A stretch of DNA of 63,883 nucleotides, filler included, from Octopus bimaculoides (GCF_001194135.2; 4 parts of 4 records of this genome joined end to end with filler, not necessarily neighbours in it); one strand, 5' to 3'; shown: positions 29,803 through 56,607, numbered from the whole stretch's first letter. Made by a program: numbers and translations. Notes: generated by a model not told the origin, from the sequence alone.

Positions 29803-29987
29803 AACATTACACATCCACAAAGGAAGACTGAGAGGAACTGCTGGTTCCCCACTGACTCACCACTAACACTATTCCATCAACATGAAGCCATTGTCACACC
29901 ATAGCAGCAGTGACACAGACAACCATTAACAACAGAACATTGGGACCAAGTCACAGTTTATACAACAAAGGATTTTACACAATGAAG
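29803..29987 (+). other. Non-coding leader exon 1 of protocadherin A (5' end in gap)
   Basis: Copy of a near-identical ~185-nt exon ending GAAG|gtaagt; found once upstream of each ectodomain exon, in matching orientation. Confidence 0.82.
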
Positions 29988-30698
29988 GTAAGTTTGTTAT
30001 TCCATATTATTTATTCAAATTATGTGAAAAAATGATTTAATATATGGCCTTACTGTAATATCAAAATGTAATATTCTGTTGGTGGCCATATTAGATTTTT
30101 GTTAGTTCATTGTTAATGCCTTCTCTTCAGACATGGCTGTCCAAGCATTTTGCTAACAGTTATATTAAAACAAAAGTCTTTTTTGGAATATAATGTCCAT
30201 GACTTTAATGTATTTGTATATTATATACTTTTGAATGTCACTAGGTCTTCATGTATTCAGTAGATTTTCTTTTTCATTCTTAACTAGTTCCCAAATCTTT
30301 ATATTCTGATAGATTGAGATAGCCATTTTATAAGAATTATTTTGAAATATCTTTGTAGCAGAATATTTACATTTGCAAATAAATTATGGAAATGATATGA
30401 TAAAACATAAAAAATTCTTACCAAATATGTAATATTATCAATAAAGAAAAATATCAATTAAATATATATATGGTAGAATCAGAAAGAGAAATAGAAAGTC
30501 CTTCGTACAGTATCATATATTTGAAGAAATGAATAGAAATGCCATTTCTGATGATTTTTCCACTTTAATAATTAGATGTTTATAAGTTATAAAATATCAA
30601 CCTTTCGTAAACATTTATAACTTATGAACATCTAATTATTAAAGTGGAAGAATTAACAGAGAAGCCATTTCTATTATGTTTTTAAGCATTGTGCCTTA

Positions 30699-31003
30699 TG
30701 GAGGCAGTGACAGGTGACTGAACCTTTTGGCGGTATACTGTGCTTGTGAAGACCTGTCCAGTCAAGTGAGATTGTAATCGTGGCAGATGCCGATGTCTCA
30801 TCAATGACACCTGTGCTGATGGTATGTAGAAATCACCCACTATGCTCTTGGAGTGGTTGGCTTTAGGAAGGGCATCCAGCCATAGAAAGGGTATTCAGTC
30901 TAATCAGATTGGAACCTGGTGCAGCTCCCTGGCTTACCAGTTTTAAGTCACACCGTCTAACCCATGCCATCATGGGAAACAGACATTAAATGATGATGAT
31001 GAT
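30699..31003 (+). mobile_element. Second SINE-like family with RTE-type (ATG)n tail
   Basis: GGAGTGGTTGGC..TAGGAAGGGCATCCAGCC core and AACCCATGCCA.CATGG.AA..GAC.TTAAATGATGATG tail; the tail recurs at about 42410-42455 (+) and 53050-53098 (-). Confidence 0.7.
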
Positions 31004-31405
31004 GGTAATATTTATTGTAGTATATATTTCATCTGTTTAATGTTATGTGAATGTGTGAGTTTCTCTGTTTGATTGTGATTCTGTGTGTGTAATACATAAA
31101 CTGTTGTTTCATTTTCACTCTTTACATTTATAAATGTTAATCTATTATCTATCTTGATTTAATATTATCAAGCAACTGAATCAAACATACTTTGATAATA
31201 TAAAAAATTATTATTATGGTATTTATTAAAATCTAATAATTTAATGATTTTCGTGTAAAATATGTTCTTTATTAATTTCTTATTTTGGAGTTATTTAATT
31301 GTATTTTTCAGTATTTTATGTAATTTTTTTGTATGTTTTCTTTTCATTAAAATAACAATATAACTGTGACTAAATTATAGAAATGTTTATATCTGAAGTT
31401 TATAA

Positions 31406-31617
31406 GGTTGTGAACTGGCAGAATCATTAGCACACCAGACAAAATGCTTTTGTGGCATTTCATTCTTCTTTTCATTCTGAGTTCAAATTCTGCTGAGGTT
31501 GACTTTGTCTTTTATCCTTTTGGGGTCAGTAAAATAAGTACCAGTTGAACTCTGGGGTTGATGTAATTGACTTACCTCTTCCTCAAAATTGCTGGCCTTG
31601 TGCCAGAATTTGAAACC
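31406..31617 (+). mobile_element. Full-length SINE copy in protocadherin A intron 1, CpG-decayed
   Basis: Colinear with the 1993-2265 copy, but CpG positions read TpG/CpA. Confidence 0.85.
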
Positions 31618-33951
31618 AATATCTAAAGACTATTGATTCATGAATTGATCTTTTGGGTCAAATCAATATTAGCTTGATATATAATTTACTTCAAGTAAAT
31701 GGTTTTTATAATTTTGTCAGTTAAGCAGTTTCTTGTTTATATATGACATGTTATATCTTCTCCATTCTCAAATACCTTTTATGTGATATTCTCATAGTAG
31801 TCTCACATGAACCTACATTTCTTGTACCATTGTTATTACCGATAAATTGAATGTCGTTTAAATATACATTTTATAATGAATATCTCTTTTGGCAGAATTG
31901 TTGTAAGCACATATTTCTGTCTTAATCCCTATCCTGTCCATGTCCTGAGTGTACACGAATTATTGTCTTTGTCTAGCAATAGTCTCATAGCTGTAATATT
32001 ATATGTTGTAAAGTGCTGTTTTTTTTAAAATTGTCACATCAACAAATATAGTTCCATCAATGGAGATTATAACAATGTTCAACTATCCACCCAAATGTAC
32101 AAATACTTCCCTGCTTATATAAGGAAGAATATATTTGTCAGTCTATGCATAAAATATTATGGTTATGTAATTTAGTTATATTACACCATCTAAACAGAAG
32201 AAGTGTTGTTTTTTAGCATATTTGTAAGTTCGTAGAGGTAAAATAACTGAGTTTTATTTAATGGAAAATTATCTCGTTTTCTATAGTAATCATATGCAAG
32301 GGAGTGAACTCAATATTTACCGATTTATGCAGTAACTGAAAAGAATCATATTATTATATATTTTATTAGGCTATAAACAAAATAAATAAATCTTGTTTTA
32401 TCTTCATTTATAATTTTTCATGAATTCTGTACGACTGTGGTCAAGTGTCAGCAGCTTACATTTAAAAAAAAATTCATTAAAATATTTTACTACACTAGCA
32501 ATTAGCTGTTCATTTATAATGAATAAAACTTTGAACAACAAATATAAAATTAATTATAATTAAGACAAAAATATTTAACAATTCAAGTAGTCTTCTGACG
32601 TAAGAATGAGATAAGAATGGTGAAATATCATGGCAGTTCTTAAGAAATTTTTGTCATGTTGTGTGGAAATACAATTCTACAACTTTAAACTCTGTATTGA
32701 AATATTTGGTTATTTTTTAAAAGTGGGAAAGAAACCACGATGAACTTGAGGAATTTATGTTTCTCAAAGATTATATTTCTTTGTCTTATAGGAATAAACC
32801 TGTTATATCATATGAATTAATCTTTGATATTATTATTATTGCCTTCTCTTTGCAAAGATAATCTCAGTGAACTTATACATGTGAGATTCTACTGTGTGTG
32901 CATTTGTCTTGCAAATTGCTCTCTTGAGGTATTTTCTCTCAGCACTATAGCTGATATTCATAACCAGGGTCACTATTTCCCCCAACACTACACCTGANNN
33001 NNNNNNNNNNNNNNNNNNNNNNNNNNNNNNNNNNNNNNNNNNNNNNNNNNNNNNNNNNNNNNNNNNNNNNNNNNNNNNNNNNNNNNNNNNNNNNNNNNNN
33101 NNNNNNNNNNNNNNNNNNNNNNNNNNNNNNNNNNNNNNNNNNNNNNNNNNNNNNNNNNNNNNNNNNNNNNNNNNNNNNNNNNNNNNNNNNNNNNNNNNNN
33201 NNNNNNNNNNNNNNNNNNNNNNNNNNNNNNNNNNNNNNNNNNNNNNNNNNNNNNNNNNNNNNNNNNNNNNNNNNNNNNNNNNNNNNNNNNNNNNNNNNNN
33301 NNNNNNNNNNNNNNNNNNNNNNNNNNNNNNNNNNNNNNNNNNNNNNNNNNNNNNNNNNNNNNNNNNNNNNNNNNNNNNNNNNNNNNNNNNNNNNNNNNNN
33401 NNNNNNNNNNNNNNNNNNNNNNNNNNNNNNNNNNNNNNNNNNNNNNNNNNNNNNNNNNNNNNNNNNNNNNNNNNNNNNNNNNNNNNNNNNNNNNNNNNNN
33501 NNNNNNNNNNNNNNNNNNNNNNNNNNNNNNNNNNNNNNNNNNNNNNNNNNNNNNNNNNNNNNNNNNNNNNNNNNNNNNNNNNNNNNNNNNNNNNNNNNNN
33601 NNNNNNNNNNNNNNNNNNNNNNNNNNNNNNNNNNNNNNNNNNNNNNNNNNNNNNNNNNNNNNNNNNNNNNNNNNNNNNNNNNNNNNNNNNNNNNNNNNNN
33701 NNNNNNNNNNNNNNNNNNNNNNNNNNNNNNNNNNNNNNNNNNNNNNNNNNNNNNNNNNNNNNNNNNNNNNNNNNNNNNNNATTTTATAAAAGGAAATAAT
33801 TTTCTCTCACATTAATGTAATGACTTTGGTTAATATATCAATTTATTTAGAAATCATTATATCTCCCTATTATAAGCTATATATTTATCTTCCAGATTAA
33901 TAATGTGAAAATACCATATTCTTGGACACTGTTTTAACATCAAGACTAGAG

Positions 33952-36740
33952 ATGCAGTTACTTCTTTGTGTTTTACTGACTTTCTTCCACTGTTCCCTAA
34001 GTGAAGATATCACTTACCATGTTGAAGAAGAGAAGAATCCCTATACTTATGTAGGGAATATTGTTGCTGATTTAAAGAAATCAGACAGCTCCTTCCTAAA
34101 GAATAAGGATTTGATTACATTTAGTCAACTTCAACAAAAGGGAGAACAGTTGTTCAATGTGACGAAAACAGGTAAACTGTACACTGTTCAGACATTGGAT
34201 GCTGAGTCTGTGTGTAGTTATGAGAAAGAATGTTTTGAAATCATTAAAGTTGCTGTTCACAAATCCAAGACATTTATGAAGATCTTAAAGATTAAAGTCA
34301 TAATAGAAGACATCAATGATCACCAACCTGAGTTTCCAACTGAAGAAGTCAACATTCAGTTTTCAGAAAGAGATGGTAAAGGAGCAAAACTATCAATACC
34401 TAATGCTGTTGATAATGATATGAGTTATGAAAACAGCTTAATTACTTATGAATTGAAAGATGATGACAGTTACTTTTCATTATTAGTTGACAAACAAGCT
34501 AATGAAATATCAACATTAGGAATAATTTTAGAAAAAAAATTAGACAGAGAAACAAAAGACAATTACAATATTGAAGTTATTGCTAAAGATGGAGGAACTC
34601 CACCGAAACAATCTATTTTAAATGTTAAAATATCTGTAGAAGATGAAAATGATAATAAACCAGAATTTTCCCAACATGTCTACAATGTCTCTATTGAACA
34701 TAAACACAAAAAGAATATTCCAGTAGTCACATTATCTGCCAGTGATTTAGATATTGGCAGGAATGGTAAAATATCATATTACTTTGCTAGAAAAACTACT
34801 GAGAAAGTGAAAAGAAATTTTAATTTAGATGAAAATACTGGAAAATTGTATTTAGCTACATCTTCAAAAATTGATAAGGAGGAATCTTTTAAAATATACA
34901 TCGAAGCCAGAGATGATGGTAGTCCTCCTCTCAGTTCCATAGCAACTGTTAAGGTAAATGTCATCAACCAACACAACAATCCCCCAAATATTGATGTGAA
35001 CTTTATTTCTACACAGAATCACAACACAGCTACCATTCTGGAAGATATCAAAGTTGGCAGTTTCATTGCTTATGTGATGGTCACTGACAATGATGTTGGA
35101 CACAATGGACAGGTGAACTGTCATATCAAAGACGACACATTCAAACTACAGTCAATGGGATCAAAGGAATATAAAATAGTTCTAAAGAAAGCAGTAGACA
35201 GAGAGACACAGGAACATTATCACTTTACTGTGTCGTGTGAAGATAAAGGATTACCTGCTCTGAAAACTGATAAAGATCTGTCAATCCAAGTGTTAGNNNN
35301 NNNNNNGTTGATCTATCAAGGTAACAACAGTGTACCTGTGATGTCAGGTAATCGAGGAGAGACATCAGACAGATATGGTCATTCGAGAAGCCATTATTAT
35401 CCTGAAGACTGGAAGACATCGACAATGAGCAGATCACTTCAGAAGTCCACAAAGGTAAGCCTTACTTTGATTGACTATTAGATGGCACCATGTTTATATG
35501 AAAGGTACTTTCCTGTTTGGAAATTTAAGAATGTTGTTTACTATCCAAATGCTTTTGGTTTACATTATCTCTGAAGAATTTACCAGTACAGTGCAGAGTT
35601 GACAAATGCCTTCTGTTTCTTGTTCAAATCCAGGAGAATCACTATTAGGTGTATTAGTGGTTCATTCATGCATTGTAGAGCATCAGTGACTTAATTAACC
35701 ACCATACTTTTTTCCCATTTGTCAATAGAACCTTTGCTAGTTTTATGAAAACTCTTCATATAGCAGTTGAGATACCTCCAGGCTTGTGTGGCAATTATAT
35801 AAACACATGCACAATATGAATTTGTTGTATAACTAATAAAGGCAGATCTAAAAACAATATGGACACTATTTACTTTTTCAGAGTGAGCTATAAAATAATT
35901 ATTTGTGATGTGTCTAATTTTGGTTAACTTGTTCTAGTTAGGTGCTCATATGGGCAGTTAATAAGAATAGCTTGTAGATAGTATATTATTACATAATGTA
36001 CCCATTAATATTTAAGAATTAGCTATGTAACAGGTTCACATTTATAAATGATACCTTTACAATATATTTTGTTATTATTTGCATTCTCAGCAGAAATACA
36101 GTCAACCAATAGAGGTGACATCTTATGGAGACAACAGACCGTCTTCTAATTATCCCACTGACACATTGACCAGTCGCAAGAGTAGTGGACAGTGCTGGAG
36201 TGAGCGGTCAAGTAGACAATATGAAGAAATACCAGCAATGTCAGGTACAACACTCTCAGCCATTCGCATTTGTTATAAATTTCATTATAATGTCTTTCAT
36301 TTTTGATGTCACTTTCTTCAAACTCTTTAATCTGTTAATTAATATAAAATTCATATCCTGAATGATAATCATGATTTTTTTAGAGACAGCTTTTGTGACA
36401 TTATGTAATGTATCTTCCTAAATGTATATTAACTAATCACAACATAGTAAGCTGTAAGGAAACTTAGAAATACCAATTACCAATAAACAACATAATATAT
36501 TGTACAATTAAAACACATCTAAATATAAAGGTTTGACAGTTTTTTTACTGATATAAAATACCTACTGACTATATGATTTATGCAATACATTTATTTGATA
36601 TATATGTATGTGTTTCAGGAATCTATGGTGGTGCCCCACCCGATGTATCAAGCACCATTGAGAGAGACCATTACCAAGACAGATATGTGAAACCTCCAGA
36701 GAGACAGTTACCTTCAACACCAGATGTTGTTGCCAGTTAA
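33952..36740 (+). CDS. Protocadherin A; coding exons 33952-35454 (with an under-sized gap at 35297-35306), 36091-36244, 36619-36740
   Basis: Signal peptide MQLLLCVLLTFFHCSLS, EC1 with C-x5-C, DINDHQPEF/LDRE/DENDNKP cadherin motifs, a single large ectodomain exon, and cytoplasmic exons homologous to gene D. About 1 kb (rest of the ectodomain and TM) is missing in the gap. Confidence 0.93.
36091..36244 (+). CDS. Protocadherin A cytoplasmic exon 3
   Basis: QKYSQPIEVTSYGDNRPSSNYPTDTLTSRKSSGQCWSERSSRQYEEIPAMS; cag|CAG acceptor and G|gtacaa donor; same 154-nt length as in D. Confidence 0.9.
36619..36740 (+). CDS. Protocadherin A terminal exon 4
   Basis: GIYGGAPPDVSSTIERDHYQDRYVKPPERQLPSTPDVVAS*; 122 nt as in D and E. 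Confidence 0.9.
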
Positions 36741-37310
36741 GTGAGACTGAGAAGTTAACACAACAGAAATAATATCACCCTTCAACATTCACACAACATT
36801 TAAAACAACAGAAATATATTAGTTAGTTAATGATATTGCTTACATATGACTGAATTCCTTTCTATGCATTTCAAACTACACATGTTATAAATATATCTTT
36901 GGAAGGTTTTTACAGATAAAAAAATAACCATCAGTTATAGCCAAGAATAATTTCAATCAAATTATAACTCTCTGTAATTACATAAACTTAGGTAAGATAA
37001 ACATTTTTGGAAATTTAAAATAAATTTTTCTCTTTGAAAAATAAAATTTAAAAGTAAAAATGCTTTCGAAAATGTTTTATTAATTATATCATAGTATTTG
37101 AAGAAATATATTTTACATTGTTTACATGTATATTTCATATACATTTTGAGTAGGAATTATATTATTTCAGGAAATATGATTTACTTAGTTTACATATCAA
37201 TATATGTTTAAATTTTCAAATCCTGCTTTGTTTAGAATTAGGTCAGATGCACACACTAACTCTTATTATCAATATTGTATTTACATTTTAAATTACACAC
37301 ACATTACCAA

Positions 37311-37436
37311 CATCAGCCATATTTTGTTAATATAACCTCTCTGTTCTAAGTATTTCTATGTCAGTCTCTCTCTCTACATCAGACATGTTGGTGTTATATA
37401 GACTTATCATGGCTGACTGTTAGTGGAGCTGATAGT
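37311..37436 (+). promoter_or_regulatory. Conserved upstream block of protocadherin B (putative promoter element)
   Basis: About 125 bp nearly identical to 46767-46890 (-) and alignable with 55688-55795 (-), at an equivalent position upstream of each leader exon. Confidence 0.6.
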
Positions 37437-37589
37437 GGTGTCTTCTCTCTCTGTATATGTATATTTCTCTCCTTTTTCTTTGTGGAGGGGAAACACAACA
37501 TCTAGTTTGAGTGAGGCTGGAGTAAGCATCACCCATCCTTCTCTCTCCCTTTCTCTCTCATACACAAATATACATACATGCACATACAC

Positions 37590-37782
37590 ACTCACATTAA
37601 ACATCACACATCCACAAAGGAAGACTGAGAGGAACTGCTGGTTCCCCACTGACTCACCACCAACACTATTCCATCAACATGAAGCCATTGTCACACCATA
37701 GCAGCAGTGACACAGACAACCATTAACAACAGAACATTGGGACCAAGTCACAGTTTATAACAAAGGATTTTACACAATGAAG
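37590..37782 (+). other. Non-coding leader exon 1 of protocadherin B (start approximate)
   Basis: Same core sequence as A, donor GAAG|gtaagt. Confidence 0.82.
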
Positions 37783-39550: not shown

Positions 39551-40810
39551 TCACAATGTCTCTATAAGATGGCGGAGGATGTGAAGATCATTATCTGTTG
39601 GGTCTTACAACTTTGTATTTGCTCAAGGGAACTAACTCAAAATTTACCATTTCTGACAGGAAATGAAAGTATAGAACTCAGATGATTTAATACTACGACT
39701 CCTCCAAAAGCTGTCCAGTTTTTCTGGTTTTGTTTTCCGTTATGTTTCTATCTTCAACGGTTAGTTTGATCGTCTGTCATCTTTAGGGTTTATATTTATT
39801 CATACATATCTTAAGAATAAATAAACACCAAATATGAATGGTAAAAGATTTTCAGCACTTTTATTTGCTATGCAGTAGTCTTGTGTAAATATCTTTAATG
39901 GAACAAAATACAATTACTTGATTCAGTGAAGTAATCATATACATCATTGGTACAGAATAGTTTGACTTGATTCAATCTCTTTTGACTTTGAAGTGGTATA
40001 GAAAATCATAGTTTATCAACATATTTTTGTTTAATGTGTCAGTTCATAATATGTAACACATTCAGTGATGATGTTCTACTGTACTTTACCATCATGTCTA
40101 AATTATATATCCAGAGCACACCTGTCACTCCTGGATGACTTTTGTTTCCATAGTAGCCCTGATCATTGTAGTTGACATGGTAGTGTGTCCAAAAATCTCA
40201 TCATCCACAGCCCACACATAAGAAACTGGTTACTGCAATCAAGGTACAATATGTAATACATATAGACTGCAGTTCAGTGGATCTTAGAGCCTTGGTACCA
40301 CCACAGAATGAAAGATGTTTTGGTATGAAGTCTAATACTTAAAGATTTGTACAATGGCAATTTTCTGTACTTCGATATTATTATGTAGTGGATTCAGTGC
40401 AAACTTTGAATTGTGAGGTAAACAAAATCCTCTTAATTCTGTCTCTTACATTTTACAGTGAAATGAACCATTGATTGGTTTGTGAGACCCTCAGTGAATT
40501 CATTTATCTAATTAAGTTAATGTCCATGAATATAGGTTGTATACATGCCTATATGTTTATATGTAGATATATACATCCATAGATTTTCACCAGTAATACT
40601 ATTTTTCTTTTCTTCCTGTGCTTCTCATTTCATGGCCTTAAACTATTATTTCCACATGTAATTAGTATATGCTTAACAGATCGATGTAATCAATGTGATT
40701 TCTAACAATAATTATGATTTCTAAAATAAGGCATCTTCTCACTTTCAAAACTTTTTTCTGTTTCAGATCAACAATTTAATACCAACAATTTAATACCATC
40801 AAAAGCAGAG

Positions 40811-41008
40811 ATGTTGCTGTATCTGTGTATTTTGCTGACTATCTTCCACTGTTATCTAAGTGAAGATATCACATACCATGTTAAAGAAGAGAATATTCCC
40901 TATACCTATGTAGGGGACATTGCTACTGACTTACAGGAATCAGACAGCTCCTTCTTAGAAAATAAGGATTTAATTACATTTAGTCAACTCCAACAAAAGG
41001 GAGAACAG
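40811..41008 (+). CDS. Protocadherin B, partial (signal peptide + start of EC1, cut by gap)
   Basis: MLLYLCILLTIFHCYLSEDITYHVKEENIPYTYVGDI...LQQKGEQ is a close paralog of A; acceptor at 40766/40767; leader exon ends at 37782. Confidence 0.88.
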
Positions 41009-41108
41009 NNNNNNNNNNNNNNNNNNNNNNNNNNNNNNNNNNNNNNNNNNNNNNNNNNNNNNNNNNNNNNNNNNNNNNNNNNNNNNNNNNNNNNNNNNNN
41101 NNNNNNNN

Positions 41109-42231
41109 TGAAACTACCAACTTTGATATCTTCCAGAATGGTAGCTGTGTTGTGATTCCGTGTAGAAATAAAGTTCACATCAATATTTGGAGCATTGTTC
41201 TGCTGGTTGATGACATTTACCATAACAGTTGCTATGGAACTCAGAGGAGGGTTACCACCATCTCTAGCCTCTATAAATAACTCATAAATAACTTTTTCTT
41301 GTAGACTTGAGGTTTCTGTTAAAAATATCTCCCCAGTGTCTGGTTTCAACTGGAAATGTGTACTATCCATTTCTGATGTCATTGGACTAAAATGATAGGA
41401 TATTTTCCTATTGTCCCCCCTGTCAGAATCCTGTGCTGACACTATGACAACTGGTATGTTGGTTTTGTGTGTTTTTGCTACTGATACATTATATATTCTC
41501 TTTGCAAAAACAGGCCGATTATCATTTTCATCATCAACTATAATCTTAACATTTAACACACTCTGCTTGGCTGGAGTCCCTCTATCTTCTGCAATAACTT
41601 CTACGTTGTATGATTCTTTTACTTCTCTGTCTAACTTTTCTTCTAGAACAATCTGAAGGTATGATACACCATCAGCATGTTTGAATACTTCCAGAGAAAA
41701 CGAGTGATTAGTTTGCCTTAATTTGTAATGAATTAATCTGTTTTTAAAACCAACGTCTTTGTCAATGGCATTTGGAATGGACTTTTTCATCCCTTTACCA
41801 TCTCCTTCTCTAAAGTGCAAAGTTATTTCCTTGTCGGGAAACTCAGGTTGGTGGTCATTGATGTCGTCTATGATTATTTTGACTTTTAAAATTCTTACAA
41901 ATGTTTTCTGTTTGTGAACAGCTACTTTAATAACCTTCGAACACTCCTTGTTATATCTGCACAGGGATTCAGCATCAATTGTTTGAAGAGTGTAGAGTTT
42001 CCCTGTTGTTGTAACATTAAATAATTCAGCCTCCTTTTGTTGGAGTTGATTAAATGTAATTACTTTCAGTTCTTCTGATGAGAAAGAGTTCAAAAATTGT
42101 TTATTAGTTGCAATAGAACCTATATATGTAATGGGGCTGTTTTCTTCTTTCACCCGGTAAGTGAGGTTTAGACAGTGATAGCACTGAATTATTAAAGACA
42201 CCAGCCACAGAATTCTCAACATCTTTAACAT
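41109..42231 (-). CDS. Protocadherin C, partial (signal peptide, EC1-EC3, start of EC4, cut by gap)
   Basis: Open frame MLKMLRILWLVSLIIQCYHCLNLTYRVKEE... to EDIKVGSF; acceptor at 42236; leader exon ends at 46435. Confidence 0.93.
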
Positions 42232-43800
42232 ATCACTGTAAAAATAAGAAAATAAAATGTGAAAAAACATCTCATCAATTAGCTCTTTCAAGTAATAATG
42301 TTTTGGATTCATAAGATAACAAGAAGACAGTTCTATAATTGAAACAAGTAATGCAACGAGCTAACAAGACAGAAATCTTATGAAATAGGATTGCCAGCTC
42401 CTGTCAAACAGTCCAACCCATGCCAGCATAGCAAAGGGGCGTTAAATGATGATGATCCCTACAAACTTGAATCAATAACCAAGCGAGGCAAAGTCAAAGA
42501 TAAGAAAGCAAAGCAAAAATAGACCTAATTAATATTGAAATAGCAACAAAACATGAAACAGCTTTACAATTTAAAGGAAGGGAGCACTACGCAAAAGTTG
42601 TCCAGTAGGGACGATAGAGACCAAAGGGTTAAAATACGACAAGGTACCAAATAAATGAACCCGAGGAGATGGTGCCCAAGCAGAGTTACTTCCCTTCTAT
42701 ACTGTTCATTCGTAAACGACTTCGTTACACCAAGAATCAGGAATTTAATTTTTGTAATGGCCTCCTTTATTTTGCTTTTTGTTTATATTTGACTATGTAC
42801 AATATATTATATCATATTTATAAGAATATCCCTTGTATCCTCCTTTTCCGACAATGGAATGATTATGTAAGCAAAAATTGAACTGTGACATAAAAGACTA
42901 GAATTATTAACTGCTGAAAAACTCGCAATCATCATCATCATTGCTATGTCCACTTTTGCCATGTTTGCCGAGGTCAGANNNNNNNNNNNNNNNNNNNNNN
43001 NNNNNNNNNNNNNNNNNNNNNNNNNNNNNNNNNNNNNNNNNNNNNNNNNNNNNNNNNNNNNNNNNNNNNNNNNNNNNNNNNNNNNNNNNNNNNNNNNNNN
43101 NNNNNNNNNNNNNNNNNNNNNNNNNNNNNNNNNNNNNNNNNNNNNNNNNNNNNNNNNNNNNNNNNNNNNNNNNNNNNNNNNNNNNNNNNNNNNNNNNNNN
43201 NNNNNNNNNNNNNNNNNNNNNNNNNNNNNNNNNNNNNNNNNNNNNNNNNNNNNNNNNNNNNNNNNNNNNNNNNNNNNNNNNNNNNNNNNNAAAAACTCGC
43301 AATCATCATCATCATTGCTATGTCCACTTTTGCCATGTTTGCCGAGGTCAGACGTCCTTCATGTTGTCAACCCACACTTGTTTACAAGCAAGGTAATATT
43401 TCCCCATAATTAGACGTTTTCCACAGAGTGGAAACGTGTAAGACCACTTGAAGGATAAAGACCTTTGTTTTACAGCTCTCATACAACATCCCGACAAGGG
43501 GCTACACACATACATGCTAGCATGCATATATACATACATGGTGGAAATCAACTCATGACCAAATAAGACCCGTTCCTAAAGTCAGTAAATCCATTCAATC
43601 GTTCTCAGTTATAAAACCAATGACACAGCAGAGGTCAAGACGACCAGGAACCNNNNNNNNNNNNNNNNNNNNNNNNNNNNNNNNNNNNNNNNNNNNNNNN
43701 NNNNNNNNNNNNNNNNNNNNNNNNNNNNNNNNNNNNNNNNNNNNNNNNNNNNNNNNNNNNNNNNNNNNNNNNNNNNNNNNNNNNNNNNNNNNNNNNNNNN

Positions 43801-43835
<35 letters not shown>

Positions 43836-45830: not shown

Positions 45831-45843
45831 TTTATTATCATCA

Positions 45844-45889
<46 letters not shown>

Positions 45890-46434: not shown

Positions 46435-46630
46435 ATTCATTGTGTAAAATCCTTTGTTGTATAAATTGTGACTTGGTCCCAGTGTTCTGTTGTTAATGGT
46501 TGTCTGTGTCACTGCTGCTATGGTGTGACAATGGCTTCATGTTGATGGAATAGTGTTGGTGGTGAGTCAGTGGGGAACCAGCAGTTCCTCTCAGTCTTCC
46601 TTTGCGGATGTGTGATGTTTAGTGTGAGTG
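46435..46630 (-). other. Non-coding leader exon 1 of protocadherin C (start approximate)
   Basis: Reverse-complement copy of the leader, donor GAAT|gtaagt. Confidence 0.82.
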
Positions 46631-46766
46631 TGTGCATGGGTTGAGTGAGAGGATGAGAGGGAAGGATGAGTGATGCTTACTCCAGCTTCATGCAAACTAG
46701 ATGTTTCCCCTCACACAGATGAGGAAGGGAGGGAGTGAGTGAGAGAAAGAGAGAGAGGGACAACAC

Positions 46767-46890
46767 ACTATCAGCTCCACTAACAGTCAGCCATAATAAG
46801 TCTATATAACACCAACATGTCTGATGTAGAGAGAGACTGACATCGAAATACTGAGAACAGAGAGGTTATATTAACAAAATATGGCTGATG
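46767..46890 (-). promoter_or_regulatory. Conserved upstream block of protocadherin C (putative promoter element)
   Basis: CATCAGCCATATTTTGTTAATATAACC...TTAGTGGAGCTGATAGT is shared with B. Confidence 0.6.
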
Positions 46891-47196
46891 TCAATGCATG
46901 TAACTATAAATCCTTCATACAATATTTCAAGATGTGAGTTTAAGAAGATATTATCAAAGGAAAATGGCAAATTAAATAAACTATGTCAAATATATTTGTA
47001 ATGTTTCTTAGGACTTGTGAAAATTAAAGGTTTTAACAGAAAAAGAGATTCAAGGAAAGAATTTCAGATTTCATTTTTGTATCTGGTTTGCAAGATTCTT
47101 TGTGTGAATTGTATTTGTAAATTTATTTTTGTATTTTGGTATTTAAAATGTAATGGAATTTGCTTGATTTTAGTGAAACTATAATTGTAACCTGAC

Positions 47197-47318
47197 TTAA
47201 CTGACAACAACATCTGGTGTTGAAGGTAACTGTCTCTCTGGAGGTTTCACATATCTGTCTTGGTAATGGTCTCTCTCAATGGTGCTTGATACATCAGGTG
47301 GGGCACCACCATAGATTC
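47197..47318 (-). CDS. Protocadherin D terminal exon 4
   Basis: GIYGGAPPDVSSTIERDHYQDRYVKPPERQLPSTPDVVVS*. Confidence 0.9.
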
Positions 47319-50300
47319 CTGAAACACAAAGTTTGAGTTAAAAAATAATTAAAATTCATGATAATATTTGAAAGCTATCTTATAATAATTCTACTTGTCA
47401 TTCCATTACTTAGCCCATCAGTAACGGTTTCACATGATTGGAGAAAAAGAGGGAGAAAGAAAAGAGGGAGAGAGAAAAAGAGGGAAAGAGTAGCATCTAT
47501 GATGTGAAGGGAATGTAATTATAACATTTTCACATGATTAGTTGAAGGGAAAGAGAGGAGAAAGAAAAAGGAAAGAGAAAGAGAGGATAGTGCAAAGAGA
47601 TAGAAAGAGGGAGAGAGAAGCATCCATGATGTGAGGTAGGGGGAATGTAATATTTATTATGTGGTTAAAAAAGTTAGCTGAAGGTAGTGATGATATAGAG
47701 GAGGAGAGTTAAAAATATAATAAAAGCAGAGGGGTGATGTTCTGATGGTGAGATTAAAGAAAGGCAGAGAGAGGGGGGGAGAAAGCGAGATGATGGAGAA
47801 AGAGAGGGGGAAAGAGAGATGATGGAGANNNNNNNNNNNNNNNNNNNNNNNNNNNNNNNNNNNNNNNNNNNNNNNNNNNNNNNNNNNNNNNNNNNNNNNN
47901 NNNNNNNNNNNNNNNNNNNNNNNNNNNNNNNNNNNNNNNNNNNNNNNNNNNNNNNNNNNNNNNNNNNNNNNNNNNNNNNNNNNNNNNNNNNNNNNNNNNN
48001 NNGGAGAGAGAGATGATGGAGAAAGAGAGGGGGAGAGAGAGATGATGGAGAAAGAGAGGGGGAGAGAGAGATGATGGAGAAAGAGAGGGGGAGAGAGAGA
48101 TGGTGGAGGTGGTGATTGGATAGTGAAAAGTGTATTTTTATTTGTATTTGAACTAAGTTTTTATATCACTTATCACTTAACGCATAAGTGCAATTCTGCG
48201 AAATATTCACGGGTCCTGTTAGTACATATAATACCAAATATAAACAATAACACAAGGAAGAATGAATTAGCAATGAGAATGAAGGAGGGCTTTAGTCTTT
48301 GGTTATAATTCTCCTCCCATTGAGGATGCATTATAGAGATATTGAAGCAACCCCAGAATTTGACAGGTGCTTATTTCATCAAGCACAGGAAAATGAAAGG
48401 TAAAGTTGATCACATTTAAACTTGGAACATACAGACCCATGATTAAATACCATAAATATTTTGTTTAATATCTAATTATTCTGCGTTTGCATACAATGGT
48501 GATGATGATAGTAATAAGAACAATAATAGTCTTACCTGACATTGCTGGTATTTCTTCATACTGTCTACTTGACCGCTCACTCCAGCACTGTCCACTACTC
48601 TTACGACTGGTCAATGTGTCAGTGGGATAGTTAGACGATGGTCTATTGTCTCCATAAGATGTCACCTCAATGGGTTGACTGTATTTCTGCTGGTGATAAA
48701 ACAGAACCTTATATAAGCATAAATACATTGTCAACTGCCATGAATAGTTAATGTCATTTCCGATGGGAATCTAGAAACGTTACATAATATGAACAGTCAG
48801 AATCAAATGTTGATTACATCTGGGATAAACAAGCACATAATATGGCACTTTCATCAACAAAACTTAACTTTATAAATAACACACATAGTTAAGCAGGTAT
48901 GATTTAGAGATTGTCTAGTTTGATACATAGTCAACATGCTTGAAGCATAAAACACTGGACTCTGTTTTAGGATCAACACATTATCCATTAAGACTAAACA
49001 GTAAATAAACAGAAAAGACAACAAAAGAAAATGTGAATAAACTATAATCATTCATGAGTACAAATAGTTTGAAAGTGGAAGACATTGGTTTGCAATGAGA
49101 AACAGGATATGCAGAACCTCCCTCACTAACTCCCAACACTGGCTGTAACGACACTCCTCAGAACCTAGAGCTTATTTCATCATACACAGATGATGTAATT
49201 CACTATAATGTAAGGGAGTTTCTAAATTAACTGAAAGAATAAAAGATTAAGATATTATTTCTAGAAGAATATTCAGATCACATCACATTTTGCTATTGAA
49301 CAGAAGCTTAAAGAAAATAGATTGAAATGAAAATTGTTCTGCAGTATCTATAATTAATCTGGTGTTGAATGATATAGAGTTATGCATAGAAATCTGCTTT
49401 CAATTCAGAGTTACTATTTACTTCAGGTAATGTCTAAATATTAAGAAATTAATTACAGAATATTTCATACTTACCTTTGTAGACTTTTGAAGACTTCTGT
49501 TCATTGTCGATGTCTTCCAGTCTTCAGGATAGTAATGGCTCCTCGAATGACCATATCTGTCTGATGTCTCTCCTCGATTACCTGACATCACAGGTACACT
49601 GTTGTTACCTTGATAGATCAACTGTCTCATCTCATTGCGACATTGGTATGCCTGTTTCTCTTCTGCTGTTCTTTCAGAGGAGCTATTTCTCACATTGTTA
49701 CATCTCACAATACACAGTGTTATAGAAACCACAATAGCTATAGATACTATCACAGCTGCTACTACAATGATAATCAACAATGTGGCATCTATGGTGTTAT
49801 CACNNNNNNNNNNNNNNNNNNNNNNNNNNNNNNNNNNNNNNNNNNNNNNNNNNNNNNNNNNNNNNNNNNNNNNNNNNNNNNNNNNNNNNNNNNNNNNNNN
49901 NNNNNNNNNNNNNNNNNNNNNNNNNNNNNNNNNNNNNNNNNNNNNNNNNNNNNNNNNNNNNNNNNNNNNNNNNNNNNNNNNNNNNNNNNNNNNNNNNNNN
50001 NNNNNNNNNNNNNNNNNNNNNNNNNNNNNNNNNNNNNNNNNNNNNNNNNNNNNNNNNNNNNNNNNNNNNNNNNNNNNNNNNNNNNNNNNNNNNNNNNNNN
50101 NNNNNNNNNNNNNNNNNNNNNNNNNNNNNNNNNNNNNNNNNNNNNNNNNNNNNNNNNNNNNNNNNNNNNNNNNNNNNNNNNNNNNNNNNNNNNNNNNNNN
50201 NNNNNNNNNNNNNNNNNNNNNNNNNNNNNNNNNNNNNNNNNNNNNNNNNNNNNNNNNNNNNNNNNNNNNNNNNNNNNNNNNNNNNNNNNNNNNNNNNNNN

Positions 50301-51996
50301 NNNNNNNNNNNNNNNNNNNNNNNNNNNNNNNNNNNNNNNNNNNNNNNNNNNNNNNNNNNNNNNNNNNNNNNNNNNNNNNNNNNNNNNNNNNNNNNNNNNN
50401 NNNNNNNNNNNNNNNNNNNNNNNNNNNNNNNNNNNNNNNNNNNNNNNNNNNNNNNNNNNNNNNNNNNNNNNNNNNNNNNNNNNNNNNNNNNNNNNNNNNN
50501 NNNNNNNNNNNNNNNNNNNNNNNNNNNNNNNNNNNNNNNNNNNNNNNNNNNNNNNNNNNNNNNNNNNNNNNNNNNNNNNNNNNNNNNNNNNNNNNNNNNN
50601 NNNNNNNNNNNNNNNNNNNNNNNNNNNNNNNNNNNNNNNNNNNNNNNNNNNNNNNNNNNNNNNNNNNNNNNNNNNNNNNNNNNNNNNNNNNNNNNNNNNN
50701 NNNGTGATAATGTTCCTGTGTCTCTCTGTCCACTGCTTTCTTTAGAACTATTTTATATTCCTTTGATCCCATTGACTGTAGTTTGAATGTGTCGTCTTTG
50801 ATATGACAGTTCACCTCTCCATTGTGTCCAACATCGTTGTCAGTGACCATCACATAAGCAATGAAACTACCAACTTTGATATCTTCCAGAATGGTGGCTG
50901 TGTTGTGATTCTGTGTAGAAATAAAGTTCACATCAATATTTGGGGGATTGTTGTGTTGGTTGATGACATTTACCATAACAGTGGCTATGGAACTGAGAGG
51001 AGGGCTGCCCCCATCTCTAGCTTCAATGTATAATTTAAATGTTTCTTCATTGAAGTTTGTATTTTTTGAGAACAATATTTCTCCTGTGATTTTATCTAAT
51101 TTAAAATATTGTTTGTTTTTCTCAAGTGTCTTTGGACTAAAATAATAAGAAATCTCTCCATTTTTACCAATATCCAGATCTTCAGCTGATACAATAACAA
51201 CAGCTTTGTTTTTGTCTTGTGTTTTCTTTACAGAAATATTGTATAGTTTTTGTTGAAATACAGGTAAATTATCATTTTCATCTTGAACTTCTATGTTTAC
51301 CTTTAAAACACTTTCTTTCGATGGACTTCCTCCATCCTTAGCAATAACTTCCAGACTATAGTGATCTTTCCCTTCTCTGTTTAATTTACTTTCTAGAACA
51401 ATCTCTAGTCGAGATATTCCATCAGCTCTTTTAGAAACTAACAATGAAAACATTTCCTCGTTGTCCTTTAAATGATAATTAATTACACTATTTAAAACTC
51501 CAACATCTTTGTCAATGGCATTTGGAATGGACTTTTTCATTCCTTCTCTGTCTCCTTCTCCAAACTGTAAAGTTATTTCCTTGTCTGGAAACTCAGGTTG
51601 GTGGTCATTGATGTCTTCTATAACTACTTTAATTTTTAAGATTTTTATGAAAGTATTTCTTTTATGAACAGCAACTTTAACTTCCTGGAAACACTCCTTT
51701 TCAAAAGTACAGAGGGCTTCAGCATCCAGTGTTTGTATTGTGTAAATTTTCCCACTTTCAGAAACATTAAATATCTGTGTTCCTTTAAGTTTCAGTTGAT
51801 TAAATGTAATCTGACCAATGTCTCCAGATGGCACTACGTCTTGAAACTGTGGATCAGCTGTAATGTCTCCAACAAATGTATGTGTATTTGTCTCTTCCTT
51901 TACCTTGTAGATTAAGTTAAAACTGAGACAGCAGGGGAAGAAGAACGTTAGCAAAACTGAAATGCTCAACATATTTTCTTTTGTCACTGAAAGCAT
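47197..51996 (-). CDS. Protocadherin D; coding exons 51996-49475 (gap 49804-50703), 48689-48536, 47318-47197
   Basis: Signal peptide, EC1-EC4, TM helix LLIIIVVAAVIVSIAIVVSITLCIV after the gap, and two cytoplasmic exons with canonical phase-matched splice sites; exon 2 acceptor at 52026. Confidence 0.94.
47765..48105. repeat. 29-bp purine-rich minisatellite spanning a gap in protocadherin D intron 3
   Basis: Unit GGAGAGAGAGATGATGGAGAAAGAGAGGG on both sides of gap 47829-48002. Confidence 0.9.
48536..48689 (-). CDS. Protocadherin D cytoplasmic exon 3
   Basis: Protein identical to A exon 3, with 8 synonymous differences. Confidence 0.9.
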
Positions 51997-52231
51997 TGAC
52001 AAAAACCAAACTTCAACAGCAGATTCTGAAATATGAAAATGGATTTAGAATTATTAGCTTGTTTTAATAACTCAATATAAAGAAACAAAATTCTGTTATA
52101 ATTTTATAAAGTGATTTGTGCCAGACATATATTCCTCCATAGCACTCATTACTTTCAGCAATGATTTCTGCATGTTTTGTCTTGAAAATACATTTTCCCT
52201 CAAACATAAGATAGAAAGATTACCGCCACCG

Positions 52232-52232
52232 C

Positions 52233-52280
<48 letters not shown>

Positions 52281-52720
52281 TATTATCATTATTATCATCG
52301 TCATTATCATTACTGAGTGAGAGAGCAGTGAATGCCATCAAAGTGATACTGGGGTAAAATATACAAAGCCCAATATATCCATCATGACTGCCTGCCTGAT
52401 AAGGGTACACCAGGGACATGCATCACAACCATGTGTGTGCAACATGATCTCATATCAAGATAAACAGCGCATGACCTTGCAGGTGGGGGCCTAGTTAGAA
52501 TTTTCTTCAGGTCGAGTAACCCATCCCACTCAAAAGGTCGCTGAATAAGGGTTGTTTAAGGGCATTGAACGAAACACCTATGTTTCCAGAGGTGAATTAT
52601 TCACACCCCAAAGAATTCTTCTCAACACATGGCTATGGTGCCCCCCCCCACCCACTACTTCTGCTCATGATCAGAGATGCACATACTGTCAGCCACCAAG
52701 GGACACACTCAACTATTTAA
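52232..52720 (-). mobile_element. Longer copy of the third SINE-like family in protocadherin D intron 1
   Basis: Homologous to 3753-3983; (GAT/AAT)n tail at 52232-52310. Confidence 0.75.
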
Positions 52721-55417
52721 GGTTGTAGAAAGAAGTACCAGTTGGGTACTGGGGTAGACCTTGTACTTATGTAAGAAATCAATATCTTATTGGAAAAGAT
52801 TTCATATGTTGGTTATATTTGATGAAAGATATCTAAGCTAAGTTGTGATTATGATTTTGCTTGTCAATCTAAGATGATGATATTTCATTTTAATCTCCAA
52901 CTGGTACTTCTATCTACAACATAAGAGTGGAGGTCAGTCTCAGAGGGATTTGAAGTTGGGAGCAGAAAGGTACACAGCTAAACACTATAAAGTATTTTGT
53001 GAGTCAATCTACAAATTCCGTCCATTGCAATAAGGTAATCCATTTAATTCATCATCATCATCATCGTTTAACGTCCGCTTTCCATGCTAGCATGGGTTTA
53101 ATTATATATATCTAATTAATTATAGCAATTGAATGAACTAAATTGGTTGATATATTGATATATTGAGGCAAAAACTTAGTTCACTTACAGAGGAATGAGA
53201 GAGAGAGAAAAAAAACAAACAAACAAAACATTAAACACTCTCCACGGGACATGATCCTTGAATCTGATTGTTTATTATCTGCAATTCTACTGTAGAGTTT
53301 GACAAGATGATGTAGTCTTACAATATGAAAGTCAATTTCATTTGATTGCATTGTCTCACTAATTATAATTCTAATGCAATTAACTGGAGGATGCAATTAA
53401 AGGAAATCACATAGGAGGCAATGAACTATGATACTTCTATTCATATAATAATGAGTAATAACATAGTTTGATGAACATACAACTTTATATACCAGTAATA
53501 TATCTTTCAGTAATGAAACCTTCTTGGCAAAGAAAAGAGTCTATAAGATCTTAAATTGATTTTCTATAACACTACAAACAGTAAGAGTCATTCATTTAGT
53601 TAGAAACACAAATCATACTTCTAGATATTTTAATATAGTGAAAATAAATATGTTATTTCCAGTAAAGATTATTTGTTGTGGAGCCTCTGATTCAACATGT
53701 AGCTTGTTGATCTAAAGATGTCAAACATTCACACAATTGAGGACCATGCATTTTGATATATATTTGTTTTGGTTGATATTGCTTATTCCTAAAATCAACT
53801 ATGATTCAATAGGCCTATGATTAAAGACATTCCAGTTGTGACCATCCTCTTGCCAGATGTGTCATACCATTTTTAAGATAGTGAAGTGTAACAGGAAGGA
53901 TATCTAGCTGCTATTTCTAGTAGGTCTAATAACAATGTAGAAATTCCATCATTGATGTATAGTGGTTTATTGTATGAAGTGCAATGTATAACAGCCTGGA
54001 AATATGACTGTTGTTCCCGTGTCCATTATATTCCTGCAAGTTCTGCTGAGGCCAATCACATAAACTTAGAGTATGACTGTGATAGGTTTTCTACACAGCT
54101 TTGCTGATGCATCTCAACAGTGTTTGGGATTAATGAGGTTATTGGTTTCACTACCATCTTTGGTGAAGATGTGATTTGTGTGTATCTGGGATAAAGCAGG
54201 AGGATAATGTGCTAAGCATGGTATAGTCATGGTTTTCTAGAGTTTTGTGGATGTGTCTGGGTGTCTGAGAATGATGGAACCTGTAATAGCTTACAACAAT
54301 AATAAACTGTACTCTTCATGTGTCCATGAGGTCTTTGGTTTTGAATGCAATTGACTTATTAAAAATAATAGCCAAATCTTCCTCAGAAATTCCTTGTCCT
54401 AAGCAAGGAATATAACTTGAAAAATTCAAGTCCAAAAGGTAATTTGCCTGGAAACAAGACGGTATGGTTATGTGTAGAATATCAACTGAATGCTTTTCCA
54501 GTTGGACATTTTTATTTGAAATACGAAATTTTAAGCTATGTTCTTGTAATATCTATTGTACCATCTCTTTCTCTGGGATAGAAACACACAGATGTAATTG
54601 ACAAGTTAACCCTTTTAAATAATCTCCTTATAAAATTTAACACAAGCAATGTGACACTTCATAATGGAAGTGATAAGCCAACCTTCTTTGTATGGTACAT
54701 TAAATGGTATATAATTACATTCAATTAAAACAGCTGGAAATTTATAATTTCTAAAATACATTTATTTGGTTGTTAAAATTAATTTGATAGATTCAATTAT
54801 TATTTGCAATTATTAAAAATATTTTTAGCAAACAGAAAAAATATATTTACTTCACTAATATATTTGCTTAATGGAAATACATATAAAAAAAAAAACAACA
54901 TATTTTCTATGCCATCTTACAATTACCAATGATAAACAATTTCAAAACATTCTTTTAAAACTCATCATTGTATTGTAATAAACATGACAATAATCTCATA
55001 ATATTATTATATGAACATATAAGATATTTCAAATGTTGAGGAGAAAGTATGAAGTAAAACCAGCAGCTATAACTTTCTCTATTGATTATCTTTTTATAAC
55101 AGACCAGCCATTTTATATAAAAAATACTGCTAAGTCTACAACAGAAACCTGACAGAATACAGTTCTCTTGAGAAAAAGGCTGTTTTTTTAATATTTTAAA
55201 ATGCTGAAATACAATATTTTATCATACAGGCTTCTATAATATTGACACAAACAGAATCTAAGAATGAATTACGTAATTTATAAAATGAAAAATCTTCATA
55301 TAATGTTTTCTTTTCACAATTCCTAAAAAGAAAAACGTTCTATGTTTAAAATATATCTATTTCTCATTTATAATAAAAGAAATACAAAACAAAACTAACA
55401 AAACTGAGACTACTTAC

Positions 55418-55615
55418 ATTGAGTGTGCATAAAATCCTTTGTTGTATAAACTGTGACTTGGTCCCAATGTTCTGTTGTTAATGGTTGTCTGTGTCACTGC
55501 TGCTATGGTGTGACAATGGCTTCATGTTGATGGAATAGTGTTGGTGGTGAGTCAGTGGGGAACCAGCAGTTCCCCTCACTCTTCTCTGTGGATAGGGGAT
55601 GTTTAGTGAGTGTGT
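55418..55615 (-). other. Non-coding leader exon 1 of protocadherin D (start approximate)
   Basis: Reverse-complement copy of the leader, donor CAAT|gtaagt. Confidence 0.82.
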
Positions 55616-55687
55616 GACTGTGTAAGTGTTACTTCCAGCCTAAGTCAGGCTCGATGTATTTTCTCTCAGTGTGAAGTAAGAGAAACA

Positions 55688-55795
55688 ATATCAACTCCTC
55701 TAATAATTTTACCTGATAAGTCTAGATAATACCAGCATGTCAGATACAGAAAGAGCTTAATTGAAATATTTTAACTTTAAGAAAGAGGACATATT
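55688..55795 (-). promoter_or_regulatory. Diverged copy of the conserved upstream block, protocadherin D
   Basis: Retains ACATGYTGGTRTTATMTAGACTTATC and TTAGWGGAGYTGATA. Confidence 0.5.
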
Positions 55796-56267
55796 ATAAG
55801 AATATATTGCTAAGAATTTAAGAAGATAATAAACTCTATCACAGTTAATGGATATTTGACCTACTTTTACAGTAATTCCCAATTCTCTCAATATTCTCCC
55901 AATTAAAGAAGGAAGAATGGCAAAAATATTTTCAATACATCTTTATTTACAAAAATTTATGATTATCCATCATTATAATCAAAAGTCTTATTGAGAAAAC
56001 ACAAAAAGATATTTTAACATTAGATATATAAAAACACTTTAAAATGACAAGGTTACTTCAACAGAAAGAGAAATTATAATTAAGGACTGTAGATAATTCA
56101 AGTTTCTGATACAAAATAATCAATGTCAGTTTGTTGACAAAGGAAGCTAAAGTCTTGGGGAAAATATTTAATGTGTATTTGGTAAGGTGTGTTTGTTGTT
56201 GTTGTTGTTGTTGTTGTTGATTGAGGACAGTCTTTAAATGTTTCAGTCTTTTAACATTAATCAAGCG

Positions 56268-56607
56268 TCAATTAAGTATTATAACATCTGGTGTTGATGG
56301 CAATTGTTTTTCTGATGGTTTTACATACCTCTCTTGGTTCTCTTGCAGCTCACTACATGCTGACGTGCTAGCCTGTATACCACAAAGCCCTGCAAAACAG
56401 CAGACAATAGAAAACATGGAGCAATCTTTAATGGACCTCATATGAGATCAAGACTGGAATTGAAAAATAGCCCTTCTCTACCTGATACTGCTGGTATTTC
56501 TTCATAGTGTGTACTTGACCTTTCACTCCTGCACTGTCCACTGTCTTTATGATTGCTCAACAAATCAGTAGTCAAATGATGTCACTGCTACTGGTTGACG
56601 AGTTTTG
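56268..56607 (-). pseudogene. Protocadherin E 3' exons (exon 3 56607-56482 frameshifted as assembled; exon 4 56389-56268 intact)
   Basis: Exon 4 reads GLCGIQASTSACSELQENQERYVKPSEKQLPSTPDVIILN*. Exon 3 retains DSGQCRSERSSTHYEEIPAVS but is 126 nt versus 154, with stops in every frame. A possible exon-2 donor lies at 58181 next to the gap. Confidence 0.7.

Follow-up and report, generated by a model that had tools for sequence, protein, structure and literature searches.

The DNA studied here is a window of 63,883 nucleotides (nt) from Octopus bimaculoides, and the part of it that we analysed (positions 29803-58192, counted from the window's first letter; ~32% G+C) carries a cluster of protocadherin genes. 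Gene units were called by six-frame reading, self-BLAST and tblastn, which yielded five: A and B on the plus strand, and C, D and a remnant, E, on the minus strand. In the complete genes the coding sequence is laid out as one big exon, followed by a 154-nt exon and a 122-nt last coding exon, and canonical splice sites flank all coding exons. The big exon encodes a signal peptide, probably six extracellular cadherin repeats (EC1-6), the transmembrane (TM) helix and the start of the cytoplasmic tail. Our subject is the distribution of divergence along these genes, which switch abruptly from dissimilar to near-identical sequence at the end of EC3.

Gene content of the array

The best database matches of the genes are all Octopus protocadherins, and the translation of gene D is identical to an O. 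bimaculoides gene model (UniRef A0A0L8FH16, P0009). Pfam reported the N-terminal Cadherin_2 domain (PF08266, E 3e-12) and, in four to five stretches, cadherin repeats (PF00028). EC5-6 of A, C and D fall in assembly gaps; the TM helix ATLLIIIVVAAVIVSIAIVVSITLCIV was read in gene D, 3′ of its gap, and a composite of gene A and the O. sinensis gene Osi_1a aligned end to end, over its residues 18-661, with the six-repeat structures 6vg4, 6e6b and 6vg1. The 200 amino acids of TM helix and tail matched no Pfam family at E 0.01 or better, and hence showed no classical-cadherin catenin-binding domain; used as a protein query they returned three matches, too few for a paralog count. An Rfam scan of the whole piece gave no family at the gathering score.

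For comparison we used the O. bimaculoides genes F1 and F2 (locus L003) and G1 and G2 (L005, another part of the array, which carries these two further paralogs), together with the O. sinensis loci L001 and L002, which are gap-free, long-read and located on two contigs; the comparison between species covers these two species and 10 genes. We saw no shared constant exons, in line with the published account of cephalopod arrays (PMC9068888). A and D each own two small cytoplasmic exons, as do F1, F2, G1, Osi_1a, Osi_1b and Osi_2a, and in G2 the last exon was located while the 154-nt exon was not found. A reading of this DNA made earlier from the sequence alone (hereafter the sequence-only reading) had described the array as whole-gene copies, each with its own constant exons, and in this it was right.

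The big exon of gene A starts behind the acceptor CAG at 33893-33895. Its 5′ part (33896-35296, plus strand; ATG at 33952) encodes the signal peptide, EC1-EC3 and most of EC4 and runs into a 10-N gap, and its constant part begins at ~34897-34925. Beyond the gap, 35307-35454 encodes the cytoplasmic juxtamembrane segment up to the donor AAG/GTAAG (the slash marking the splice site), followed by the 154-nt exon at 36091-36244 and the last coding exon, with stop codon TAA, at 36619-36740 (exons 3 and 4 of the sequence-only reading). Gene B is represented by the 5′ fragment of its big exon (40767-41008, plus strand; ATG at 40811), which comprises the first 66 codons, is of an A-like lineage and enters a 100-N gap. 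The 5′ part of the big exon of gene C (41109-42235, minus strand; ATG at 42231, switch near 41277) extends from the signal peptide to early EC4, where it meets that 100-N gap from the opposite side; by tblastn, the region from EC4 to the tail and the small exons of C are absent from the piece. Gene D, on the minus strand, consists of a 5′ part of the big exon (50704-52025; first ATG at 51996, switch near 51030), a 3′ part beyond a 900-N gap (49475-49803; end of EC6, TM helix and juxtamembrane segment), the 154-nt exon (48536-48689) and the last coding exon (47197-47318).

Divergence along the genes and between species

The sequence-only reading had noted an abrupt switch near the motif YIEARD, and its positions were confirmed: the Y is found where EC3 ends, at 34897 (gene A), 41277 (gene C) and 51030 (gene D). 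Identity of the nucleotide sequences, taken per 25 codons, ranges over 0.48-0.88 upstream of the switch and 0.89-0.99 downstream. Maximum chi-square breakpoints fell at codons 310-335 in 10 of the 11 pairs, with the observed value reached in none of 300 permutations, and in cross-lineage pairs divergence fell from 0.32-0.35 on the left of the breakpoint to 0.018-0.07 on the right. In the gap-free, long-read pair Osi_1b/Osi_2a (2307 nt), divergence was 0.341 before codon 313 and 0.018 over the next 1.4 kb. NCBI models from O. vulgaris and O. sinensis that stand for another subcluster have a like profile at the protein level, with a later boundary, in EC4-EC5. A cryptic splice donor at the switch was considered and rejected, as GAAGCAAGGGATGA is no donor and the frame is continuous on single contigs.

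The change is also seen at synonymous sites. Synonymous and nonsynonymous divergence (dS and dN, by Nei-Gojobori) in EC1-3 (codons 1-322) reach 1.4-2.2 and ~0.3, respectively, between the A, C and D lineages. In EC4 overall, dS is 0.05-0.38 and dN 0.00-0.05; among A, C and D, dS is 0.12-0.21, and dN is 0.008 between A and D and 0.036-0.045 when either is compared with C, over a common stretch of only 49 codons. In EC5-6 of three O. sinensis paralogs dS is just 0.006-0.026 (~0.03 at most), and in the two small exons of A and D it is 0.17, with a dN of 0.005. Divergence at synonymous sites is thus not uniform along the genes (1.4-2.2 against 0.006-0.2), and the collapse of dS in the 3′ part implies that protein constraint alone is not enough to explain it. 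In EC1-3 the protein of A is 56% identical to that of D and is no closer to it than to members of other protocadherin subclusters (41-56%); in EC4 the two are 98% identical. The constant part is nevertheless, as judged by its dN/dS of ~0.03-0.1, under strong purifying selection, in agreement with what had been proposed earlier (~0.05-0.1 when that proposal was examined).

Direct counts between A and D bear out those made before. After the Y of the motif there are 13 differences in 327 nt, of which 5 lie in the last 271 nt; at the end of the big exon there are 8 in 148 nt. The 154-nt exon has 8 differences and encodes an identical protein, and of the 2 differences in the last exon one changes the protein (A to V), so that these exons of 122-154 nt are 95-98% identical. 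Around them, the introns of A and D give no BLAST match and local-alignment z scores of ~0 against shuffles, their 3′ untranslated regions (UTRs) show no similarity, and likeness ends within ~10 nt of the splice sites and directly after the stop codon. The introns of A and F1 are unrelated too. In F1 and F2, which are tandem neighbours, the introns are almost the same (z ~100), and the likeness extends to UTR and constant exons, with an EC1-3 that differs by 18%; the identity of their introns indicates that copying takes place at the DNA level and can be long. The sequence-only reading had noted that the introns do not align. The observation stands for A and D but is weak taken alone, since most introns of A also fail to align with the closest O. 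sinensis gene, and it needs a cross-species control. Intron 1 of F1/F2 does align with O. sinensis (z 12-20). Introns therefore outlast divergence at the level of species, and the exons of A and D are at or below that level, which argues that these exons were homogenised without their introns. The simplest reading is that copy tracts end where homology ends.

The variable part, too, is heterogeneous. Within the A lineage dS is patchy, amounting to 0.08 in the C-terminal two thirds of EC1, 0.73 in a patch of EC2 and 0.79 in a patch of EC3. Codons 61-125 of this lineage (codons 1-322 correspond to 33952-34915 in A) are 97-100% identical across paralogs and species, L002 and L003 included, and diversity is found in patches at codons 20-60, 126-200 and 281-322. 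Blocks are shared in a reticulate manner: A resembles Osi_2b in EC2 and Osi_2a in EC3, and the start of EC2 in F1 is a C/D-like block. By region, dN/dS in EC1-3 is 0.13-0.34 and nowhere above 1. High dN goes with high dS, and the patches hence look like old divergence that escaped homogenisation. The earlier proposal that EC1-3 is diversifying as a recognition code was not borne out by these ratios; a role of EC1-3 as a recognition code can be suggested by analogy with the vertebrate clustered protocadherins, in which EC1-4 form the trans interface and EC5-6 the cis interface.

The two parts of the genes also group differently. In a neighbour-joining tree of EC1-3 the genes fall into lineages that cross the species border (A, F1, F2 and Osi_2a on one side, D and Osi_1b on the other, 100% bootstrap), whereas in the corresponding tree of the constant part of the big exon they group by species, again with 100% bootstrap. 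Six to seven sites are fixed between the species across lineages, and none follows the lineage grouping. Distances in the constant part average 0.033 among the O. bimaculoides genes, 0.017 among those of O. sinensis and 0.047 between the two species. Of 10 shared polymorphisms, EC4 holds 4, the TM/cytoplasmic part 5 and the 154-nt exon 1. Grouping of EC1-3 by lineage and of the constant part by species points to concerted evolution confined to the 3′ part. In the more distant octopod Argonauta hians (P0122) identity in the TM/cytoplasmic tail is 87% across 65% of its length, a likeness which indicates that the constant module is old.

Next to the switch, the linker between EC3 and EC4 (~34950-34975 in A, and also in C and D) reads VINQHNNPP instead of the usual calcium-binding DxNDNxP. 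It is kept in all paralogs of both species and may be a linker without calcium binding.

Leader element, remnant gene and assembly gaps

Each intergenic interval holds one copy, on the strand of the genes, of a ~500-nt element composed of a TATA-like block (TTATATAGACTTAT), a low-complexity stretch and a ~130-nt core. Gene A retains its 3′ part (29803-29987, plus strand), cut by the left edge of the piece. A promoter-like block with a putative non-coding leader exon is found for gene B at 37394-37782 (plus strand; TTATATAGACTTAT at 37394, core at ~37640-37772, donor after 37782), for gene C at 46435-46809 and for gene D at 55418-55729 (both on the minus strand). Copies outside the window lie at L003 1306, 8127, 14080 and 21843, at L001 ~4100, 14740 and 16020, and at L002 ~8300. 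An alignment of 12 core copies, drawn from both species, has 124 invariant columns out of 130. Differences in the core between species (1.09 per 129 nt) equal those within species, and the core is more conserved than any coding part. It contains an invariant upstream open reading frame (uORF), MKPLSHHSSSDTDNH. The 3′ end of the leader, AATGAAG/GTAAGT, is a splice donor, and every big exon has a pyrimidine tract and CAG 6-58 nt upstream of its ATG. We infer that the element is the promoter and non-coding leader exon of each gene; a leader exon of this kind accounts for the exon numbering of the sequence-only reading and for its title, which called the array constant-variable-constant.

The core had no match in Rfam, and its folding was less stable than that of shuffled sequences (z +1.45), with no sign of a structured RNA. 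When an O. vulgaris locus from a different subcluster was searched, the leader was absent, which indicates that it is specific to the present subcluster. A transposon was considered as the source of a repeated element of 200-500 nt and was rejected, given one copy per gene unit, on the gene's strand, in a fixed place and ending in a splice donor. We raise, as a doubtful possibility suggested by these sequence features, that the leader may be a common regulatory module, acting in promoter choice or, via the uORF MKPLSHHSSSDTDNH, in translational or localisation control, and that private but interchangeable constant exons could permit splicing of a big exon to the small exons of a downstream gene. 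If true, the array would be a living intermediate towards the vertebrate design of variable and constant exons. The invariant leader offers a concrete sequence for tests of array regulation.

Gene E (56280-56569, minus strand) consists of diverged copies of the two small cytoplasmic exons, at 56471-56569 and 56280-56390, with no big exon within the piece. Its first small exon is broken by a frameshift and stops, the two exons are only ~80 nt apart, and its last exon is of another type, ending in QERYVKPSEKQLPSTPDVIILN before the stop. Gene E may be a pseudogene, or else a member of another subfamily with its big exon beyond the edge of the piece. The last coding exons of the subcluster are of at least two types, one with GIYGGAPPDVSSTIERDHYQDRYV and one with GIYGSQQDTPVNPERQQYQDRYV (L001 3211-3337 and 14007-14133), and a third occurs in P0003. 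With several types of last exon, the tail is not fully uniform across the array.

Projection of the genes onto a gap-free reference showed that no gap within an exon is continuous. The 10-N gap of A (35297-35306) stands for ~865 nt that hold the rest of EC4, EC5, EC6 and the TM helix, and the 900-N gap of D (49804-50703) stands for ~757 nt of EC4-EC6. An open reading frame of 519 amino acids at 33922-35481 reads through the 10-N gap of A and was rejected as an artefact. All seven O. bimaculoides genes examined (A, C, D, F1, F2, G1 and G2) have an N gap within EC4-EC6, where failure of a short-read assembler is to be expected of near-identical copies. The public models P0009 (D, 602 amino acids) and P0001 (F1, 646 amino acids) splice over the N gaps and so are without EC5-6, and gaps of this kind may be part of the reason for the unusually short octopus protocadherins that were reported (PMC6339937).

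The 100-N gap at 41009-41108 separates the truncated genes B (plus) and C (minus), which point at each other, and at this gap the A-B block (plus) and the E-D-C block (minus) converge. Since the 3′ exons of C are nowhere in the piece, the join either hides much sequence or is misoriented. Probably the scaffold is wrongly oriented or joined here, or else the gap marks a true inversion breakpoint from which several kb are missing. The 312-N gap at 42979-43290 is flanked by an exact 62-nt duplicate (42917-42978 and 43291-43352), so that the contig ends probably overlap and the gap is probably spurious. The gaps at 32998-33780, 43653-43800 and 47829-48002 are intronic or intergenic.

Origin of the mosaic and relation to known protocadherin clusters

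We consider it likely that the locus is a tandem array of whole genes in which old EC1-3 lineages are combined with a 3′ part that was homogenised by non-allelic recombination, under purifying selection. Each unit would comprise the putative promoter and leader exon, one big exon and two small cytoplasmic exons, and EC1-EC3 would represent old paralog lineages, already separate before O. bimaculoides and O. sinensis parted. Beginning with the last strands of EC3, sequence would have been copied repeatedly between paralogs, by interlocus gene conversion or unequal crossing-over, with strong purifying selection acting on the protein of the copied part. The copied tract would take in introns between neighbours with similar introns and exons only between old lineages. 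The sharp boundary could arise because EC1-3 divergence blocks heteroduplex formation, and converted recognition domains would probably also be selected against. By analogy with vertebrates, the outcome would be many membrane-distal recognition modules on one membrane-proximal, TM and signalling module, with no need of shared constant exons. Homogenisation of the constant part, as proposed from the sequence alone, is supported by the more than 10-fold drop of dS at the switch, by the grouping by species and by the 6-7 fixed sites.

Several points weigh against this reading. The species signal rests on just those 6-7 fixed sites, and in EC4 the dS among O. bimaculoides paralogs (0.05-0.38) is not clearly lower than that to O. 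sinensis (0.07-0.22); as these ranges overlap, some of the homogenisation may be older than the separation of the species. The fraction of G+C at third codon positions (GC3) is higher in the constant (0.35-0.39) than in the variable part (0.25-0.29; p 0.0006-0.05 in five of seven genes), but G+C is raised at codon positions 1 and 2 too, which makes the signature of biased conversion weak. Frameshifts occur in the O. sinensis big exons of Osi_1b (L001 10001-12340) and Osi_2a (L002 350-2712); these could be assembly indel errors or mark pseudogenes, and polishing of repeats could inflate likeness. EC5-6 of O. bimaculoides is unread in every copy, conversion in exons of 122-154 nt amid unrelated introns is mechanistically demanding, and the evidence for recombination consists of maximum chi-square, dS and trees.

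The sharing of introns, UTR and constant exons by F1 and F2, whose EC1-3 are 18% apart, is also what one would see had whole genes been duplicated recently and the 5′ part alone then been replaced from older donors by diversifying conversion, or been driven apart by positive selection. The mosaic of the variable part, with A like Osi_2b in EC2 and Osi_2a in EC3 and F1 C/D-like at the start of EC2, and the range of A-lineage dS along EC1-3 (0.08 to 0.79) fit this history too. We nonetheless regard it as unlikely, because a recent duplication would have left the flanks alike, given that introns still align across species, and in A and D neither the introns nor the 3′ UTRs can be aligned around the near-identical exons; moreover, a dS of 1.4-2.2 is beyond the reach of positive selection, and dN/dS is at most 0.34 throughout EC1-3. 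Still less probable is that no copying took place and that extreme constraint, synonymous sites included, preserved the constant part, for example through RNA structures for A-to-I editing. RNA editing is reported to affect cephalopod protocadherins more heavily than other genes (PMC6339937), the leader core shows that constraint at the nucleotide level exists at the locus, and the constant part is close between species (4.7% nucleotide divergence, dN ~0.01) and even in the tail of Argonauta hians (87% identity). Constraint alone, however, cannot combine a constant part that groups by species with an EC1-3 that groups by lineage, nor yield substitutions common to all paralogs of one species, nor make the introns of F1 and F2 identical. 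We know of no synonymous constraint that comes near the 10- to 100-fold drop of dS seen here.

The quality of the assembly invites the suspicion that the near-identical segments are one collapsed sequence, or a consensus which the assembler of short reads or the scaffolder placed on several contigs, for the sequence is poorest right there, with EC4-6 gaps in all copies, genes colliding at a 100-N gap and a 62-nt duplicate. Yet in each copy 150-400 nt of constant part lie on the same contig as a unique EC1-3 and carry private differences, the protein-level pattern recurs in the other subcluster in O. vulgaris and O. sinensis models, and the like architecture persists in the gap-free long-read loci of O. 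sinensis, where an EC5-6 dS of 0.006-0.03 speaks against collapse. An artefact is thus highly improbable, and we give equally little credence to RNA-templated repair, in which a spliced mRNA or cDNA donor would produce exon-only identity between old lineages. Such repair would suit the 95-98% identity of A-D exons of 122-154 nt between unrelated flanks and the stop of similarity ~10 nt from splice sites and at the stop codon. Conversion templated by cDNA usually removes introns, and the homogenised genes retain theirs; in addition, the F1/F2 tract takes in introns, and tracts that end where homology ends give the same pattern with no new mechanism.

Arrays of protocadherins in cephalopods are reportedly described by Albertin et al. 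in Nature in 2015, and regional gene conversion in zebrafish and mammalian clustered protocadherins is said to have been found by Noonan et al. in 2004 (Genome Res 14:354). Full-gene duplication, convergence with vertebrates and "homogenization through gene conversion" have been published for cephalopods (Albertin et al. 2022 PMC9068888; Styfhals et al. 2019 PMC6339937), and these papers describe multi-exonic genes with one large ectodomain exon and very similar clustered paralogs; cephalopod protocadherin arrays are also treated by Wang and Ragsdale 2017, as quoted in papers that cite it. The general message is therefore mostly anticipated by published work. The convergence with vertebrates put forward in the sequence-only reading accords with the published view and was overstated, being already in print (PMC9068888, PMC6339937). 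In the accessible cephalopod literature, that is, apart from the 2015 paper with its supplement and the 2017 review, where priority is possible, we found no mention of the switch at the end of EC3, the incongruence of species and lineage, the exon-confined islands or the leader. With two histories in each gene, whole-protein trees are mixed, and orthology can be read from EC1-3 only.

The mammalian alpha and gamma clusters resemble the octopus array in having one large exon with cadherin repeats (six in mammals and probably in octopus), TM helix and short tail, and in head-to-tail genes with apparent promoters of their own and variable ectodomains on a common tail. They differ in that their variable exons are spliced to three shared constant exons, of which the octopus has none, its tail being without a Pfam match. 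In loci of the vertebrate type a conserved promoter element (CSE/CTCF site) stands before every variable exon; in octopus each gene is preceded by the TATA-like block and leader. Octopus and vertebrate clustered protocadherins are, according to the literature, not orthologous. A close parallel is found in fugu, whose subclusters have a divergent 5′ part and >99% identity in the 3′ part of the variable exon, the two parts meeting at a discrete point in EC4 or EC5, a pattern ascribed to repeated regional gene conversion (PMC1852091). In both animals the 3′ part of the big exon is near-identical in nucleotides, the boundary is discrete and similarly placed (residues 331/332 in fugu Pcdh2alpha2-7, ~316-335 in octopus), EC1-EC3 are taken as the part that bears diversity, and draft assemblies break there (PMC1852091). 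The octopus stands apart in that its identity is 93-98% in EC4 and exceeds 99% only in EC5-6 of O. sinensis, the rise in GC3 is weak, and its protocadherins expanded independently of those of vertebrates. In fish, splicing leads to single main cytoplasmic exons that are shared, whereas in octopus private small exons are homogenised as islands amid unrelated introns. A design of many heads on a common stalk and tail would thus have arisen twice, each time kept by homogenisation restricted to one region, with a boundary at EC3/EC4-EC5, and its rise twice with the same process would point to a functional partition of the molecule that is independent of vertebrate splicing.

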